From positions 310,001-374,000 of the forward strand of contig JBBPEB010000002.1 in NCBI GenBank assembly GCA_039096225.1: a stretch of 64,000 nt of DNA. Reading direction: 5' to 3'. The notes beneath the pieces are model-generated. The model saw only the letters and a list, made by a program, of their open reading frames with translations, was not told the DNA's origin and searched no databases. How positions within the stretch are numbered: position 1 is the stretch's first letter; the number at the start of each line of letters is the position of its first letter. The DNA is from Blastocystis sp. Blastoise. Lineage: Eukaryota > Protista > Bigyra: Opalinata. Shown in pieces: positions 2,117 to 44,335 of the stretch. The position numbers were made by a program, and so were the translations under genes.

Positions 2117-4349
2117 TTGTTCTGTTTTTTGAATGATGTCTATTTGTATGAATTCATACTGGTTATCAAAAAATGTAAAAAGAATCACCAAGGGTTAGTC
2201 TCGACCTTTTGAACTTCTTAGAGGAAGTCACTGGTAAATTTAATACCTTTATTGTCAAGTTATACTAAATTGGCTTAAAGGATATTTTCTTTTTCTTCTA
2301 TTTAAGATGAATAAAAAGAGTTTCTTTATAATATTTCTTCCTTTTTCTTGTATAGTTTTCAAGCATATAAACTATTTAGTTGTTATAAAATTTATTATAT
2401 ATTATTTTCATATGAATATTAAGTTTTTTAATGATAATATAAACAATAACGTTGTCATAGGATCAAAATAATATATTAGATAAATAATAAACGCGTTTAA
2501 ACTAATTCTAAACTTTATCATATATTCAATATTAGTATTATATTATTGAACAAAGAGCAAATGCCTTCATTTCTAATTATTTATTTGGTAGATTTAGCTT
2601 GATTTAGTTATTTTTGAATGACAAAAATAGTATAGCAATATTTAATGCAATTATTTAAGATATTTACAGAAATAATAATTGAATTTTGTTAAAACTCTCT
2701 TGTTAATCAAGAATTAATTATTGATCACTATGGACATTTTGTGTTTTTTTGACCCTATTTCCCGTAAGAGAAACAACAAAATGACTGGGATTTTTTAATC
2801 AAAAATACGTTGGCCTAAACTCGAGAAAAGAGTGTCCGCCAACTTGTCAAGTTTCTCTCTTTTTGACGAGAAAAACTTAAAAATAACTCTACAAAATATA
2901 TTGTTTATTTATATAATCATAGACATTCTAAATATTGACTATTTTACAGTGTTTTATGATTTAAAATGACTGTTTAAAACCAAAAAGACTTTAATTTTTT
3001 CTCTGAAGTCTATAATTCAGGAATGGATTACATGAGTGACAAATTTTTTAAAGTTGTGTGTTCTCTGAGTGATGTATTATCATTTCAATCATTCTCGTCA
3101 AGTCCTTTTACAATAAAAACCATTATACAGCCTAAACCAAAACACACCTAAAAATTTCTTCTTTTTTATTTCCCAAGGAAAAAACAATAAAATGACTTGA
3201 CTTTTTTATTCATCATTTTTTAGCCTAAAGACGACAACATTTCTTTCAGCCAACTACCCTAGAAAGTCAAAACAATTAAAAATTCAAAAAAGAAAAGTAA
3301 AACGGAAGCTCTTGTTTTTGTTTATTGATTATCGTCATTAAACCTGTTTTTAAAAATATGACTTTAGAATATCATTCAGGACTTGATTTATAGTTCAGGG
3401 TATCGTTTTAAGGTTTAAAATAGCTTTTTTGAGAGAATTCATAATTATGTCCTAAACCAAGAGGAGTTGTGTGTTTTTATCATCTCTGTTGTTAGATATG
3501 TGTATACACAACATACTCAGCTTCACATAATTGTTTTTCTTGCTAGTCAAGATTTTTCACTCATTTTTAAATATTTGATTTTTAGTCTCAAAAGTGGTAT
3601 AGAGTCTCTATACATGCCTGTAAGAATCGTTTTTAATACTAAAAAGTCAAAAATATTAAAGAAAAGTGACAGTGAAAAAAGGAGGGAAAAAATACTTTTT
3701 TTGAGTTTCTTGATATTCCCGCAAAAATGATTTTTCTTTTAAGACCTGAATACACCCATACGCTATTGAGCCTATTAACTTAGAAAATATTTTCATTTGT
3801 TACTTATTTTCTTTATTTTTATTTTATTTTTATTAGCTGTTATTTTAAAAAATAGAAGTTGATTTTAACTTCAGATTATTCTCTTGTATGTATATTACTA
3901 TTTTTTATTCTTTATCAATATTAACATTCTCCCATTCTCTAGCATGTATAGGTTCCTGCTCGTCCATGGTTATAAGAGTCCTCTTCAGTCCATGTCAACA
4001 ACGTCTATGATGTCAAACTACTTTCAAAGTATATATGTATTTATTTATTTTTATAATTATCTCTAATTTTTTTCTTTGTTATATTTTTAAGTATTATATA
4101 ATAGAGTACTTATCGTATATTCATTCTATCTATTATTAGCTTTCTTTTTGTTTTTTCTTAAATTAGAATCTAATTCATTTTATTATTTATTTTCATTATT
4201 TTTATATTTTTATTTATTATTATTTATTTATTTAGGTTGTTTTCTACTGTTTCTGTTGGTTATCTTTCCCTATGACTCAACATCACCAAATTCATTTTTT
4301 TCTATTAGGTATGTTTATTTATTTATTTATTTATTTATTTATTATCTAG

Positions 4350-6359
4350 TTCTTCTTTATTTCTTCTTCTTACACAAAATGATTCCTTCTTCTCTCTTCT
4401 TCATTTTCTTCCTTCTACACTTTTATCTCCTTATTTCTTCATCTTCTTTCTTTATTACTTCTTCCTATGCCTTGTCTCCAGCCTATATCCTTGTCTCTCC
4501 CTTTGATTCATTATCTTCCTCAGATCTTCATTTTTCTTTTATTTTTTCTTCTATCTAAATTCCTTTATTTTTCTTTTTTTTAATTATACCTCTCTCTTAT
4601 CTTCGCTTCCCTTTTATATCACTCTTTCATTACTCTTTCTTAATCACTATTCTATTTACATTGTATTTCGTTATGTCTTTTTCTTTTATCCTGTTATCCT
4701 CTTCTCCTTATTCTATACTTCTTTTTCCTCGACATGTATTAGTGTATACCCTCCTTTTCTTCCTCTTCCTCTTCTTCTTCTTCTTCTTCTCCATATAATT
4801 CTTTGCTTTTTTCAGATCTTCATCTTCTTATTTATATTTATATCACTATTTATTATATATATAGTTCTCTTCTATTATTTGCCTTCCTCCTCTTCCTTCT
4901 TTCTATTCTTCTCATACTTCTTCTCTCCTCCTTCTGATTCCCTTTTTTTTACTGCCCTATTTTCCTTCTTTATCTTCCTTCTCTCCTCTTTCTGTATAAT
5001 TCTATCTCAATCTTCCTTCTCTCCCTCTCTATTCTCGTATCCATCTTTATCCTTATTCTTTTTCCATTTATTTCTCTCTGTCCCTGTCTATTTTATCTTA
5101 TATGTCTCTTTCTACCTTCTTGTTTCCTTTTATATTTCCTTCTATGTCTCCTTTTCCACTTTATATCTACTTTTTTTTCTCTCTCTCCTTCTCTCTATTA
5201 TTATATATTCTTATGTTCTAGTTATCTATTTTCTATTTTTATTTCTATCCTTTCATTCTCTATATTGTTATATCTACTTCTATTTTGTCTCTTTTCTTCT
5301 ATCTTAATCTTCTATTTAATCCTTTTATTTCTTTCTATATATCTATATCTTCTTGTCTCTAACTTCTTTCTTAATCTCTTTTATATCCTTCTATTTCTCC
5401 TTCTATCTCTCCTTCTTTCTCCTTTTCTATTTTCTTCTAACCATCTTTTTTCCTATTTTTCTCTTTCTATCCCTATTATCTCATTCTCTATCTTCTTCTA
5501 TATTCTTCTTCTTTCATCTTCTCTCCTTCTTCCTTCATCTTTCAATTTCCTTCTCTATCTTCCTTTTATCTCAGCTACTCCTTCTGTCTCAATCTTCAGT
5601 CTTTCCTTTTCTTTCTCTTTCAACATCATTCTATCTCTCTGTATTCCTATATTTCTCTTCATATTTCTCTATCCTTATCTATCTCATTCTACCTCATTTA
5701 TGTGTCTCAATCTCATTCTCTATTTCCTTCTATTTTCTCTTATCTACTTATATCTTCGTATATTTCCTTATATCTACGTATATCTACTTCTCTATCTTAT
5801 TATATCTCCTTCTAACTTAATTTACTTCCTCTTCTTCTTTTTCTCCTTCTATCTCCTCTTCTATCTCCTCTTTATTCTCCATCATCTTCTATCTACTTCT
5901 CTATTTCCATCTACATCCTTCCATCTTACTACATCTCAATCCGTTTTCTCTCCTTCTATATCCTTTTATATCCTTTTATCTCTCTTTCTCTCTTATCCTA
6001 TTTATTTTTCTTATTTCTATCCATTTCTATCTACTTTATCTTCTCTATCTCATTCTATTGTATCTATATCATTCTCTTATCTTTCTATCTCCTTCTATTT
6101 TTAATCTTTTCTATCTACTTCTCCTTCTCTATTTCCTTCTATTCACTTCTATATACATCTCATTCTTCAAATCATTCTATATTCTTCCCTTCTTCCTTTT
6201 AACTCTTGCTATTTGTTTTTATTTTAATCTACTTCTCTCTTCCCTCAATCGACTTTTATCTACTTCTCCTTCTCTGTTTGATTCTATCTCCTCTCTATCC
6301 ATATTTTCCTTTTTATTAATATTTATCTCCTTCTCTATATCTTTCGGTATTCTTCTATC

Positions 6360-6432
<73 letters not shown>

Positions 6433-8170
6433 ATATCTATCTATTTATTTATCTCAATCCCCTCTCCCCTTCTATATATTTTATTACCTTCTATGTCTCT
6501 ACCCTATTTCCCGTTTTCTTTCTGTCTCTTTCTTCTCTCATATACTATTGTTCTATCTTTTCTTTTTTTATTCTTCTTTTTTTCTTCTTTGTTTTTTCTA
6601 TTATACTTCTTTATCTTGCTTTGTCTCTCCTTCTCTCTATGTCATTCAAATTATAATTCTCTCTATCATTCCCTATCGTTTTCTTTGTATGTATTTTTCT
6701 TTCTAATTTTTTTCTATATAAATTTATCTTTCTTGATATTCACTTCCTGCTCCTTTTTTCTCCCTTCTTCGTCTCATCTTCTTTTCTTCGTCTTCCAATT
6801 CTATCTGTTTTCCTCCTCCTTCTCTATCCTTCTCAATTCCTCTCTACCTATCTTTATATTCTTTCTTTTTTATACACCTTCCCTACTCCTCTATTTCTCT
6901 TTTTATCTTTATTCTTGTATCTATTTTTATCTTATTCTCTATTTCATTTGATTTCTTTTGTATATCTCTCATTCTATATAGAATTCTATCTCTTTCTATC
7001 TAATTTCTTCTTTATGTCTCTCTTTTCTTCTTTCTTTCTATTCATCTATTAGTGTATCTATCTATTTATATCTTTGTATTTTTTTTTCTCTCTATCTATC
7101 TATCTATCTATCTATCTCTTTTATTTCTTTATATCTTTCTGTTTCTCTATATATGTTTCTTGTTTATTCTTCTTTTCTTTTCTTTCTCTTCTTCTTCATT
7201 TTCTTGTATATCTTCTTCCTATTCTTTATCTTACTTTTCTTTCTTTTTTTCACCTCCTTCCTTGTCTCTTCTTCACATTCATCCTCTTGTTCTCTTATTA
7301 ATCTATTTATTCTTTCTTATCATTATTCTATTTATTCTTCATCTTCTTGTTGTCATTATTCATTTCCTTCTTCTTATTCTTCCTTATCTTCCTTATCTTC
7401 TTATTCTTCTTCCTATTCTTCTTCTTCTTCCTTATCTTCTTCCTATTCTTCTTTTCTTCTTCTTCCTTATCTTCTTCTTATTCTTCCTTATCTTCCTTAT
7501 CTTCTTATTCTTCTTCCTATTCTTCTTCTTCTTCCTTATCTTCTTCCTATTCTTCTTTTCTTTTTCTTCTTCCTATTCTTCTTTTCTTCTTCTTCCTTAT
7601 CTTCTTCTTCTTCTTCCTTATCTTCCTTATCTTCTTCTTCTTCTTATTCTTCCTTTTCTTCTTATTCTTCTTCCTCTTCTTCTTCTTCTTCCTTTTCTTC
7701 TTCCTCTTCTTCTTTTCTTCTTCTTCCTTTTCTTCCTTATCTTCTTCCTATTCTTCTTTTCTTCTTCTTATTCTTCCTTATCTTCTTCTTATTCTTCCTT
7801 ATCTTCCTTATCTTCTTCCTTATCTTCTTCTTATTCTTCCTTATCTTCCTTATCTTCTTCCTTATCTTCCTTATCTTCTTCTTATTCTTTATCCTCTAAT
7901 CCTCTTCTCTTCTGCATTCCTTATTATTATAGATCTCTATATATCTATCTTTGTCATTTATTATAAATTATTTTTCATTTTTTTTATTAATCTCAATAAT
8001 TAAAGACCCTATCTCATTTACTTTATATTTCTTTCTCTTTTATTCTTTTTTACTTCTTTTCCCTTCTTCTAGCATCCTTTTTCACTTATACATATATAAA
8101 TATATCCTTACACATCATACTGACTCATTATTCCTACTATTTTACTTTCATTTATGTATTTTTATTCTAT
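4350..8170 (+). repeat. Polypyrimidine low-complexity tract, including (TCTA)n at ~6353-6440 and an imperfect (TTC)n/CTTATCTTC array at ~7365-7890
   Basis: Near absence of G on the + strand; overlapping F/L/S-rich ORFs in all three frames are compositional artefacts. Confidence 0.9.
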
Positions 8171-8175
8171 ATTAT

Positions 8176-8244
8176 CCTTAAGCTTATATTGGTAAGTATC
8201 TATCAGTTTATGATAGAAAACAGGTTCAATTCCTGTCTTAAGGT
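8176..8244 (+). ncRNA. tRNA-like (mascRNA-like) cloverleaf, 69 nt
   Basis: Acceptor CCTTAAG/CTTAAGG; D-arm CTTA-TATTGG-TAAG; arm CTATC-AGTTTAT-GATAG; T-arm ACAGG-TTCAATT-CCTGT; no nt 8-9 linker and no U33. Confidence 0.7.
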
Positions 8245-10084
8245 CAATTACATAACTAATTCTTTATATATAGGTATCAATAATTATATTATATTAATTT
8301 TTTCAAAAATTATCTATTCAAATAGATGAAGATAAATTAGATCAATTACTATTTTTTCTTTACATATGTATTTATTTCATCATTGAATGCATTGATAATA
8401 TATAGATCAATCAAAAATAGCATTCAAAATAATCTTTTTAACAAAAAGAGACACAATAACATTCAATTACTTCTTAAGTGTATTATAAAACAAAATAATC
8501 TTCTCAAAAGATTATTCAAGTCGTTTTATAATGAGTATATGTGAAAAATTAGTTTAGTTCAAAATAATAATTCTCATTTTTCAAAATTATATTATCAAAT
8601 GATTCTGCGTAATTTTTTTTTCATATAACCACTATACCCTTTTACACAAGAAAATAATCATTTAAATACATTTTTAAGTTGATAAACAATAAATTAAGAA
8701 TTTATTCTTGTTAAAAAACAAAATTCTTAGAAAATATTACTAGAATCATACAAATAATCAATGCAACTATTCAATTATACACCTTTAACGTGATTTAAGA
8801 CAAGTCATAAAAATGGAGATTCTCAATATTTTATATTTTTTAACTAATTGATATTTTAATAACTTTTAAACTTCATTTAAACACTAAATATGTAATATAA
8901 TATGTTTTTGTCATTTTCGAAATTAGAATATGTATTTCAAATAATTTTAGTTTTACTAAAAATCACTTAAAATGAATACACAGAGTTTGTAGACAATAAA
9001 TAAATTATGAATAAAACTATATATCGATATAAGACTTTTTTTGACAAAAAAGTGATTTTTGCATTTGTTTTATAATAAACTATCAACACGACTCCGACTA
9101 TTCAACTAAAAATATATAAAATATGATTTTTGTTTGTTTATACGTATATTTGATAATAGTAAGTCCTTGAATACTAGAAAAAGTTCTTGCTGAGTAATTA
9201 TAAAATACTATTTTGATTTGTTTTTGATATTATTTAAATGAAAAACACTATTTGCATGAAAAAATGCTTACTCTATGTATTTCAAGTCTATTTAAAGGTA
9301 TTAGAAGACTTTAACTTGATTCCAATTATTGCTTTAATTCACTTTTAAAATGTTTTTACCACTCTCTTTGTCATATTATGATAACAGATTAATAAAAAAT
9401 CGGGACAAATACATTAAAAAGATAATATTTCATAACATTTTTCGACTCTAGACCTTTTTATCTTCATTTTCTTTATTTTATAATTTTATTGAAGATATGT
9501 GATAAAACTGATTCTTTAAATAATGATTCAGGCAATCATTCTGGATTATATAAATGACTTTTATTCTGGAAATAGAAGTTTCAGAGTCTTCTCTATAAGT
9601 CTGTATTGTAACCTATATTTATTTTTTAAAAGACTTATACTTACTGAGTGATACTAAAAATAATTTTGACAATTAAGGATAAAAATCACTCTTCCATAGT
9701 CAAAACTGATTATAAAATGATATAATGATAAATAACTATATAATTCTTTAAAATAAAACAATTTTTGTATTACTTATGATAATTATGATAAATTGAAAAT
9801 AACAATAACAATATCCATTTTCCTCATAGAAATAAAATTTTTCTTTCTCTTTTATTCTTAACCATTCATTTTTCTTATGATGAAGATTCTCTATATTTAG
9901 TAGATATGAGATTATTCATGTTTATTTTCATTATTTCAGCTATATCTTCTAAATTCCTATTACACCCTTTTATAACAAAACAAAATGCTACATGACTTAT
10001 CACATATTTATTTTATTATATCTTATATGATTAATATGATATATTATTAAATTTTATTTTTATTTTATTATATATGATACTATT

Positions 10085-10760
10085 ATGATGGTAGGTGTTT
10101 GCTGTTTCTTTATATTTTATTTTTTCTACTCTATTCATTCATTTTCTATAGTAGCTGTCTCTGCTTGGTGTTTTGACACTTGCTGGTCTCCTTAAACGTT
10201 CTGGTCCTTCTTGTGTGTGGTCGTGGCTCTCTTATAGATGGGTTCTTTAGGTCTAGAATGGAAGGAATCAATGTTAAAAGAAGGTATATATCATCTATAT
10301 TATCTATTACATATTATATAACTAACCCCACTTTATATTTATATAGCATTAATGTATATATTTATATTTTATTATTCTATATTAATTTACTTTATTATAT
10401 ATTATTATATTATATAACTTACTCTATCTTTATATAGGTTTCCAGGGGTTCCGTTGCTGTCGTTGTTGTTAATTGGAGAGAATGGTTTATAAAAAGTATA
10501 TATATATATTTAATTATATTGTTTTATTCATTATACTATTTATCATATATCTTTTATAGGATGGTTCTTTGTCTTTGATTCCTTGCCTGTCTTGTAATGA
10601 TTAGAAAAGGTATATATTTTTTATTTTATTATTATTTTAAAATGTTATATATATATTATTATTAGTAATACTTAACTAATATCATCTCTTTATATAGGTT
10701 GGTTAGGCTTAAATGCAAATTAAAGACTGAAACTGTCCTGGTTGAAATATTATAAATTAA
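10085..10760 (+). ncRNA. Putative spliced non-coding or micropeptide transcript inside the CACTA element
   Basis: Four G-richer exon-like blocks separated by AT-rich GT..TAG introns (10091-10151/4, 10284-10437, 10496-10559, 10610-10697); no long spliced ORF. Confidence 0.45.
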
Positions 10761-11048
10761 ATATTATATATATTTTATTATATTATTTATTATATGTTTT
10801 ATTATCTTTTTTTTATATATTTATTATTATTGTTTTCTATTATTTGTTTTTATGATTATTTGATAATATTTAATTTGTTTGTTTTGTTATATCGTTTATT
10901 ATTACACCACAAAAAGAATAAAAAAAGCCAATAAATGAAAAAATAGAGAATATTTAAAACCATTTTTATTCGCCAATTATTGTTTTAAGGTGCGTCATAC
11001 TTTTGCACTGCTTTTCGATTTTATAAAATCACTGAAACTCTGACAAAA

Positions 11049-11260
11049 AATTTCACTGCTCACCACTGGGGAAACCAAAGCAAAAAAGTCGTTGGACCTT
11101 TTGTCAGCTACCCTTTAAAATTTTTTCACTGCTCCACCACTGGGGAAACCAAACAGAAAAATCAAATAACCTTTTGTCAGCTACATATTTAAAAATTTTC
11201 ACTGCTCACCACTGGGGAAACCAAAACAAAAAAGTCGTTGGACCTTTTGACAGAAACCTG
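11049..11260 (+). repeat. Three ~73-bp subterminal tandem repeats of the CACTA element
   Basis: Core TTTCACTGCTC(C)ACCACTGGGGAAACCAAA...CCTTTTG(T/A)CAG at ~11051, ~11124 and ~11197. Confidence 0.9.
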
Positions 11261-11522
11261 AAAAAATGTCCATAGTGGATGAGTATATATAAATGCATAG
11301 AATATATGTTTATTAAAAAACAAAGTTAGTAATATTGAAATAAAGGAAAAAAAACAATTAAATCTATTTATTATATAAATAATTTAATAAAAAAAAAGTT
11401 GTTTACACAGTATGTACTAACAGCACAAAAGTCCAAAATAAATATATTTTAGTATACAAAAAATAAATGAAAAAATAAATAAATAATACAATATTAGATA
11501 AAGAATTTCATATATAATAAAT

Positions 11523-43559: not shown

Positions 43560-44335
43560 GATTTTAAATCTCATATTCTATTTATCTTGTGTACCTGCAA
43601 GAAGTCGTCCTTTTGGTTTATTTCTGTATGTTACTTATCTATCTATTCTATATCTCGTAGTTGACTCATTTTTTAATCTTCTGATTTCTCAGATCGTCAA
43701 AATCTCAATTTCTGTCGAGGTTGGTCAAAACGTTCTGAAAGGTATATATTCTATATTATTTATATATTTATTATCATTTATTTATATTATATATATTTCT
43801 ATACAGTATTGATGATCAACAGAACGATGATTATTGTTTCCACTTCACTCTCTTCTTTTCTTCTTTAGCTTTCTAATGGTCCCTTTGACTCTTTTATGAT
43901 CTCCTGATGTTATTGAAATGGAATTAAATTATTTCTTACGTGTTTTAGGTATGTATATATATATGTTTTTTTCTTTTTAATTATATTTGTCTTTTTATGA
44001 TTCTATTATGAATTAATTTATTTTTATATATATTATTTTTCATTAATATATATATATTTGCTTATATATACATGTATATATATCTATATTATCTCTATAG
44101 CTCTTTATATATATATATTAATATCATTCTATTTTATTATCTATATGATAGCATTGATTATAGTATTAATTGTTCTATCTATTTATGTATATGATAATTC
44201 TTCAACTATAACTTTTACTCTTCTCTCTATTCACTCAATTATTAATATTCTTATTCATTATATTTAAGCTCCATAACGGATGGAAATATATATCTATATG
44301 TATATATATATAAAGGTTCAATTCCTGGCTTTTAT
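43560..44335 (+). ncRNA. Putative spliced non-coding transcript ending in a degenerate tRNA-like element (44266-44331)
   Basis: GT-AG intron-like segments 43626-43660, 43742-43806 and 43949-44100; no spliced ORF; TCCAT-AACGG-ATGGA hairpin plus AGG-TTCAATT-CCT T-arm. Confidence 0.4.

Follow-up and report, generated by a model that had tools for sequence, protein, structure and literature searches.

The locus and its transposon

The window analysed here is a stretch of 64,000 nucleotides from Blastocystis sp. Blastoise (assembly GCA_039096225.1, contig JBBPEB010000002.1, positions 310,001 to 374,000), and positions are given in the numbering of this window unless a contig is named. Its plus strand carries, in this order, three intron-like intervals, a tract of C/U-rich sequence of about 3.8 kb and a tRNA-like cloverleaf. 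The original prediction had read this arrangement as a long non-coding RNA (lncRNA) gene of the host, of the MALAT1/NEAT1 type. Rather than a host lncRNA gene, the region 3850-8244 is internal non-coding cargo of a non-autonomous CACTA (En/Spm-type) transposon, of which the genome has about 30 copies. The transposon measures 8552 bp and encloses both the tract and the cloverleaf (Table 1).

When copies were fetched together with their flanks, homology to the window stopped at 2726 and at about 11280. The terminal inverted repeat (TIR), CACTATGGACATTTT, was found 33 times in forward and 33 times in reverse orientation in the 33.3 Mb of genome scanned, against 0 and 3 for the controls. The 3-bp target-site duplication (TSD) differs among three CACTA elements (GAT/GAT, GCA/GCA and CAT/CAT). 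The features that place the element among the CACTA transposons are thus the CACTA TIRs, a 3-bp TSD that varies between copies and a transposase-encoding relative with the same ends, the last of these being borderline. No open reading frame (ORF) of 100 amino acids (aa) or more was present in 2726-11277 outside the low-complexity tract.

Table 1. Positions of the transposon, its parts and a second locus of similar layout in the window.
Feature	Position	Strand	Description
5' target-site duplication GAT	2723-2725	.	GAT repeated at 11278-11280, on the 3' side of the element
Whole CACTA transposon, non-autonomous	2726-11277	+	Copies 99.7-99.85% identical across exactly 2726-11277
5' TIR CACTATGGACATTTT	2726-2740	+	Perfect 15-bp repeat, begins with CACTA
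Exon/intron-like cassette	3855-4349	+	Exon-like 3855-3885, 3943-4028 and 4236-4308; intron-like 3886-3942, 4029-4235 and 4309-4349
Pyrimidine-rich degenerate minisatellite tract	4350-7930	+	84% C+T, 2.3% G; begins directly at the third AG acceptor
AT-rich, G-poor spacer into the cloverleaf	7931-8175	+	G 2.4%; unstructured; poorly conserved
tRNA-like cloverleaf, linker-less	8176-8243	+	68 nt; 7-bp acceptor stem; 4-bp D stem with TGG in its loop; 7-bp anticodon-like stem
First run of at least 5 T 3' of the window cloverleaf	8298-8303	+	T6 at +55
Second exon/intron-like cassette of the same element	10085-10760	+	GC-richer segments, clean GTATAT...TAG boundaries, no real ORF
Three subterminal direct repeats	11049-11260	+	About 73 bp each; self-matches
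3' TIR	11263-11277	-	Inverted mate of the 5' TIR
Second locus: exon/intron-like cassette, AT-rich tract and decayed cloverleaf	43560-44335	+	Repeated in the genome at 70-93% identity

Cloverleaf, tract and splice-like cassettes

The cloverleaf has a canonical T arm with a GGTTCAATTCC core, a variable region of 2 nt and an anticodon-like loop of 5 nt, and its acceptor and D stems follow each other without a linker. The minimum free energy of 8176-8243 is -20.8 kcal/mol (z -4.31), and 0 of 200 shuffled sequences folded as well. ARAGORN and Rfam, run over the window, called only a tRNA-Leu at 2033-2116 and not the cloverleaf. A scan with Rfam 15 to an E-value of 10, covering 7500-8400 and seven other cloverleaf loci, gave no match to tRNA or to mascRNA-menRNA, and ARAGORN called one out of 15 sampled cloverleaf loci. 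A canonical tRNA gene was rejected on the missing 8-9 linker, the 7-bp anticodon-like stem, the 5-nt loop, which varies in sequence, and the lack of an Rfam match. The gene that was called is a bona fide tRNA-Leu(TAA) gene on the minus strand (Rfam, 53.8 bits); it lies about 610 bp from the transposon, beyond its 5' end, and is unrelated to the cloverleaf family. At 8314-8390 on the minus strand, a weak C/D-box small nucleolar RNA (snoRNA)-like match to snoR21 was observed (19 bits against a gathering threshold of 45, E 5), which is probably due to chance.

From 4350 to 8175 the sequence is composed of 14.7% A, 26.3% C, 2.4% G (90 of 3826 nt) and 56.6% T, or 83% pyrimidine. G amounts to 11-12% elsewhere in the window and to 8.4% on the 3' side of the cloverleaf. 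The GC skew of the tract ranges from -0.74 to -1.0 and the longest run without G is 562 nt. The G-poor state persists up to 8175, the base before the cloverleaf, and this end of the G depletion at the mimic was counted as a link between the two. About half of the tract consists of degenerate tandem repeats, with periods of 3, 4, 9, 10, 21 and 30 nt, and a single ATTAAA is located at 7999.

A coding role was rejected for the plus-strand ORFs of the tract (up to 304 aa), which match no Pfam family and are long since stop codons need purines. The minus strand of the tract holds no ORF of at least 100 aa. Because many runs of five or more T occur within the tract, RNA polymerase III (Pol III) is excluded and RNA polymerase II (Pol II) would be required for any RNA spanning it.

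Read base by base, each of the three intron-like intervals of the first cassette starts with GT and ends with AG exactly at the positions listed in Table 1. Their signature, GTAT(G/A)T...TAG, matches that of the introns of an ODC-like host gene in the window (GTAT(A/T)T...TATAG), and most of the splice-like motifs persist in subfamilies whose identity is as low as about 80%. The ORF starting with MYRFLLVHG was rejected as a protein, its ATG being lost in three diverged subfamilies. The second cassette is 93% identical between the two main subfamilies of the transposon, A and B, described below, and all its genome matches lie within copies of the element family. A genome search for a host parent gene of both cassettes (with 3560-4350 and 10060-10770) returned only element-family copies among the best 40 candidates, although a diverged parent could escape such a search.

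On these points the original prediction was borne out. The pyrimidine-rich composition ends at the cloverleaf, the intron-like boundaries fall where they had been proposed and carry a host-like signature, and the cloverleaf lies on the same strand, with a fold backed by covariation (see below). It had also been remarked that an A-rich tract for a MALAT1-type triple helix is missing, and none was present in the sequence before the cloverleaf.

Copies and relatives of the transposon

About 30 TIR pairs were found in all, and their spacing separates subfamilies A and B. The spacing is 8.4-8.6 kb in about 17 pairs, which form the subfamily of the window copy, and 8.83 kb in about 11 pairs, belonging to a subfamily that is about 87% identical. 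Further single elements have TIR spacings of 4.4, 15.5 and 22 kb.

The 15.5-kb relative (C23:362896-378401) has a CAT TSD and the same CACTA ends, and only 2726-2888 and 10765-11277 are common to it and the window element. Its 676-aa ORF gave a borderline match to Transposase_21 (E 1.3e-6; 28.2 bits with the protein and 30.8 bits in the genome scan, for a cut-off of 28.6) and a weak one to DUF4218. This relative has neither the tract nor the cloverleaf. The 4.4-kb element (C22:28677-33114) is a deletion derivative with intact ends and its own TSD, GCA, in which the equivalent of window 4639-8581 is missing, comprising most of the tract and the cloverleaf. Since both elements are without this cargo, the tract and the mimic are not needed for transposition. 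The Transposase_21/DUF4218 relative presumably mobilises the 2726-11277 element in trans.

The same relative adjoins a copy of subfamily B at a distance of 62 bp. It also holds a 271-aa ORF with a piggyBac-type domain (DDE_Tnp_1_7, 24.3 bits), which may be a nested or captured fragment of a second transposase. At C24:351410-373427, a TIR pair 22 kb apart surrounds a cloverleaf of subfamily B, probably marking a CACTA copy that has received a nested insertion.

Identity between A and B is a mosaic. It is at least 99.4% over 4236-6700 and 10761-11277 and drops to 74-85% over 6701-10084, from which it follows that the subfamilies recombine, by recombination or gene conversion.

A genome-wide family of tRNA-like cloverleaves

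A covariance model (R1) was built from four cloverleaf variants. In the genome scan with this model at least 150 matches were listed, 38 of them within the CACTA family, and a strict cloverleaf pattern gave 180 genome matches against 0 for its reversed control. The 121 bp surrounding the window cloverleaf are present in at least 38 genome copies, of which 18 are identical. When the window element was compared by BLAST with five other cloverleaf-bearing repeat families, the cloverleaf alone was found in common.

In a set of 20 distinct variants, 96.9% of the stem cells form standard pairs, compared to 38-44% in controls with slid partners. Changes on both sides were seen for 11 of the 23 pairs and involve each of the four stems; none of 500 shuffles reached any of these measures. 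The D-loop GG of the tRNA elbow and the T-arm core are invariant among the variants and the acceptor/T minihelix is kept, while the anticodon loop drifts.

The transposon lineage itself shows the same tendency. Between A and B the cloverleaf is 92.6% identical, against 73.7% and 77.8% for its flanks, the value of the 5' segment being the lowest of the element. The five differences between the two cloverleaves comprise one compensatory change, from a U-A to an A-U pair, and three unpaired positions, and a copy on contig C11 carries the A.A intermediate of this pair. On the plus strand, G.U is more frequent than A.C, by 8 to 3, a weak hint that the plus-strand RNA may be the form under selection.

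Because of the covariation, the conserved island and the compensatory change in the transposon lineage, the mimic is taken to be a genuine, selected tRNA-like structure. Its family numbers at least 180 copies, which several repeat families unrelated to each other carry. These tRNA mimics borne by transposons form a new and well-supported family. No match was obtained in a metagenome scan that used the majority pattern of the cloverleaf. A full-text search of the literature gave no paper describing tRNA-like elements in transposons of the CACTA, Helitron or Mutator-like (MULE) kind, which is no proof of novelty. Contigs C9 and C12 contain dense, mirrored clusters of high-scoring tRNA genes, suggesting that organellar DNA is present twice in the assembly.

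Recurrence of the layout

The order of cassette, tract and cloverleaf was also found in an unrelated repeat family, L048. Here, GC-richer segments bounded by GTATGT...TAG are followed by a CT-rich tract of 2 kb starting immediately behind an AG, by about 300 nt of AT-rich sequence, by the cloverleaf and then by a T-run. As the window element and L048 have the same order, the layout forms a real class that is carried by transposons. All 15 cloverleaves sampled first have G-poor, T-rich low-complexity sequence upstream.

Such a class had been proposed from the second locus in the window, at 43.5-44.3 kb. The layout of this locus is indeed similar and the class is real by way of L048, but the locus itself is repeated DNA with a decayed cloverleaf (44280-44335; 18.4 bits, E 0.04).

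Tandem units of about 3165 bp were observed at C4:1501900-1511899 (L047), and five cloverleaves are located on this contig at a spacing of about 3.16 kb, in two runs. Each unit contains a GC-rich palindromic hairpin, about 500 bp of (TATATTA)n and a cloverleaf, in a layout that looks Helitron-like.

Proposed processing of the mimic and alternative explanations

As best explanation of the whole, we favour a CACTA cargo with a selected tRNA mimic that is processed within transposon transcripts, and consider it somewhat probable. The plus strand would be transcribed through the mimic, whose acceptor/T-arm minihelix would be recognised by RNase P and RNase Z. Cuts by these enzymes beside the mimic would define RNA ends inside the transposon transcripts and release a small non-decoding tRNA-like RNA. 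We infer this cutting as the most likely mechanism; the features read by RNase P, RNase Z and the CCA-adding enzyme are exactly those conserved in the mimic. Some production-and-processing role for the mimic is fairly probable. It is more tentative, and rather doubtful, that a spliced Pol II RNA containing the pyrimidine tract would end at the cloverleaf. It seems unlikely that CACTA and other DNA-transposon families carry a whole class of RNAs of this kind, spliced Pol II products that are pyrimidine-rich and free of G and whose 3' ends RNase P cuts at a covarying, non-decoding mimic.

Several observations weigh against processing within transposon transcripts. The 220 nt before the cloverleaf are unstructured (7956-8175; -2.9 kcal/mol, z +0.43, centroid unpaired) and less conserved than any other part of the element, so a long RNA ending there would have no protection of the MALAT1 type. 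The recombination between A and B means that the high identity of the tract is no evidence of constraint and that conservation is partly not due to purifying selection. The tract is not pyrimidine-only in all families: that of the Helitron-like tandem units is (TATATTA)n, which makes G-poor, T-rich sequence the common denominator, and one cloverleaf family has no obvious tract. Finally, a run of at least five T follows within 25 nt downstream in six of nine cloverleaf lineages, against a background of 13%, which fits an autonomous Pol III unit.

Three public sequencing runs (X1 to X3) from one study, none of them recorded as RNA, were compared with 3600-8500 (4901 letters). X1 contains 62% of the sequence words of the element, and X2 and X3 contain none. 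An X1 contig is unspliced across 3839-4180, which includes intron 1 and the donor of intron 2, and X1 contig sequence is continuous over 7853-8366, through the cloverleaf and with similar depth on both sides; the joints in X1 were low-complexity artefacts only. If X1 is DNA, these contigs are uninformative. If it is RNA, they contradict the predictions of a spliced RNA and of a cut 3' end, and thus count with the points above.

The first alternative is an independent Pol III small-RNA gene, in which the cloverleaf would be transcribed from internal A- and B-box-like elements up to a T-run, like a tRNA gene or the head of a short interspersed nuclear element (SINE). The tract would then lie outside the RNA and act at the DNA level, for example as a nucleosome-free or TATA-rich region or as repeats that expanded where the Pol III complex sets up a polar fork barrier. 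Besides the downstream T-runs, this reading is favoured by a B-box-like core, GGTTCAAnnCC, that does not vary among the examined copies even at loop positions free of pairing constraint, and by the likeness of the D arm to the A-box region in canonical tRNAs. The composition of the tract also varies by family, from CT-rich to TA-rich, as expected if low complexity alone matters. Against this, the lack of the 8-9 linker makes for a poor A box, and T-runs are common in this T-rich DNA. The subfamily of the window copy, the most successful one, has an interrupted T-run nearby, with the first uninterrupted one listed in Table 1, and the far border of the tract is a splice-acceptor-like AG in two unrelated families. 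Taken together, a Pol III gene of this kind is somewhat unlikely.

A DNA-level element is quite improbable. The B box would bind TFIIIC without productive transcription, as an extra TFIIIC (ETC) site or a tDNA barrier, insulating the transposon or its neighbours against the spread of chromatin states, with the purine/pyrimidine tract forming H-DNA or excluding nucleosomes. The invariant B-box-like core and the long mirror-like purine/pyrimidine tract adjoining it agree with such a function. Binding to duplex DNA, however, selects no compensatory changes in the four stems outside the B box, and G.U pairs are tolerated more than A.C on the plus strand.

Very unlikely is neutral debris, in which a captured and decayed pseudogene of a tRNA or organellar tRNA, lying beside a runaway microsatellite, would be copied passively and the ORFs of the tract would be meaningless or encode a low-complexity peptide. 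Captured fragments are frequent in non-autonomous CACTA elements, tract and cloverleaf are dispensable for transposition, the near-identity of the copies reflects recent spread rather than constraint, and the ORFs belong to no Pfam family. Decay does not account for covariation across diverged families, for a conserved island in diverged flanks with a compensatory pair within one transposon lineage, or for elbow nucleotides kept in at least 180 copies.

A literal MALAT1/NEAT1-type nuclear lncRNA of the host, with a stable 3' end that RNase P forms independently of poly(A), and with a role as scaffold or in sequestering pyrimidine-binding proteins, is most improbable of all, for although the same-strand order of cassette, tract and tRNA-like element is real and recurs, the locus belongs to a set of about 30 transposon copies bearing TIRs and TSDs, it has no ENE or A-rich tract and no Rfam match to mascRNA-menRNA or tRNA, its 3' region is unstructured and poorly conserved, sister families have tracts that are not pyrimidine-specific, which also weakens the proposed sponge for pyrimidine-binding proteins, and no spliced contig was present in X1, a run not recorded as RNA.

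Relation to known systems

In its termini, its 3-bp TSD and its subterminal direct repeats, the element resembles non-autonomous CACTA/En-Spm transposons (CMC superfamily) of the Pack-CACTA type. As in these, only the ends are common to the element and its transposase-encoding relative, and the interior is unrelated, non-coding or captured sequence. The cargo differs in that it contains no recognisable host gene fragment; it consists of a splice-like cassette, a 3.8-kb tract and a tRNA mimic, the last of which also occurs in other repeat families.

The vertebrate RNAs MALAT1 and NEAT1_2, with mascRNA and menRNA, likewise consist of a long non-coding stretch followed on the same strand by a non-decoding cloverleaf that has kept the parts which RNase P, RNase Z and the CCA-adding enzyme recognise, namely the acceptor/T-arm and the elbow. 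The system described here differs in being multicopy transposon cargo in a microbial eukaryote, known from sequence alone. It also lacks the ENE triple helix with its A-rich tract, a structured region in the upstream 220 nt and a match in Rfam. These differences, together with the copy number of the locus, remove it from the MALAT1/NEAT1 type proper.

In plant mitochondrial t-elements and in dicistronic tRNA-snoRNA transcripts, non-decoding tRNA-like signals for cleavage by RNase P and RNase Z set the ends of neighbouring RNAs. The mechanism proposed for the mimic is the same. The context is different, organellar or within host genes in those cases and, here, nuclear, transposon-borne and repeated in at least 180 copies.

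With SINE heads derived from tRNA and with type-2 Pol III genes, the cloverleaf has tRNA ancestry, a B-box-like core and, in most lineages, a downstream T-run in common. SINE heads stand at the 5' end of retroposed units, which have a tail and TSDs that vary, whereas this cloverleaf is internal to DNA transposons and the sequence upstream of it is conserved within families. In addition, SINE heads usually decay, while the stems of the cloverleaf covary. Homology of the upstream flanks within subfamilies, and the position of the cloverleaf 5.4 kb into the CACTA element, spoke against a tRNA-derived SINE, and this reading was rejected.

Structured RNA modules borrowed from the biology of lncRNA 3' ends have also been associated with transposons. 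ENE triple-helix elements reportedly occur in transposon RNAs of plants and fungi (work attributed to Tycowski et al. 2016), and an ENE element in a transposon RNA is also described as Evade ENE (PMC12501189). The likeness lies in a transposon carrying such a module. Its nature differs: ENEs clamp a poly(A) or A-rich tail by means of U-rich stem-loops, and the module found here is a tRNA mimic without an ENE.

Biological meaning

What had been taken for a lncRNA gene is repeat cargo, and the unit of counting is the repeat family, not the window. At least 180 non-decoding tRNA mimics are located on DNA transposons of this genome, and two or more unrelated families have the mimic downstream of a splice-like cassette and of a G-free tract of kilobase scale. 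Should the mimic be a Pol III unit, DNA transposons would be spreading Pol III genes or TFIIIC sites through the genome. If it is processed, as we favour, transposons would use the tRNA-maturation machinery to shape their own RNAs, possibly for end formation, for escape from polyadenylation-linked surveillance or RNA interference, or for the production of small RNAs. tRNA-like processing signals on long nuclear RNAs have so far been described only for vertebrate MALAT1 and NEAT1 (PMC12941219). If RNase P does cut a spliced Pol II RNA at the mimic, this would be the first case of MALAT1-like maturation outside the vertebrates, and one that is spread by transposons.

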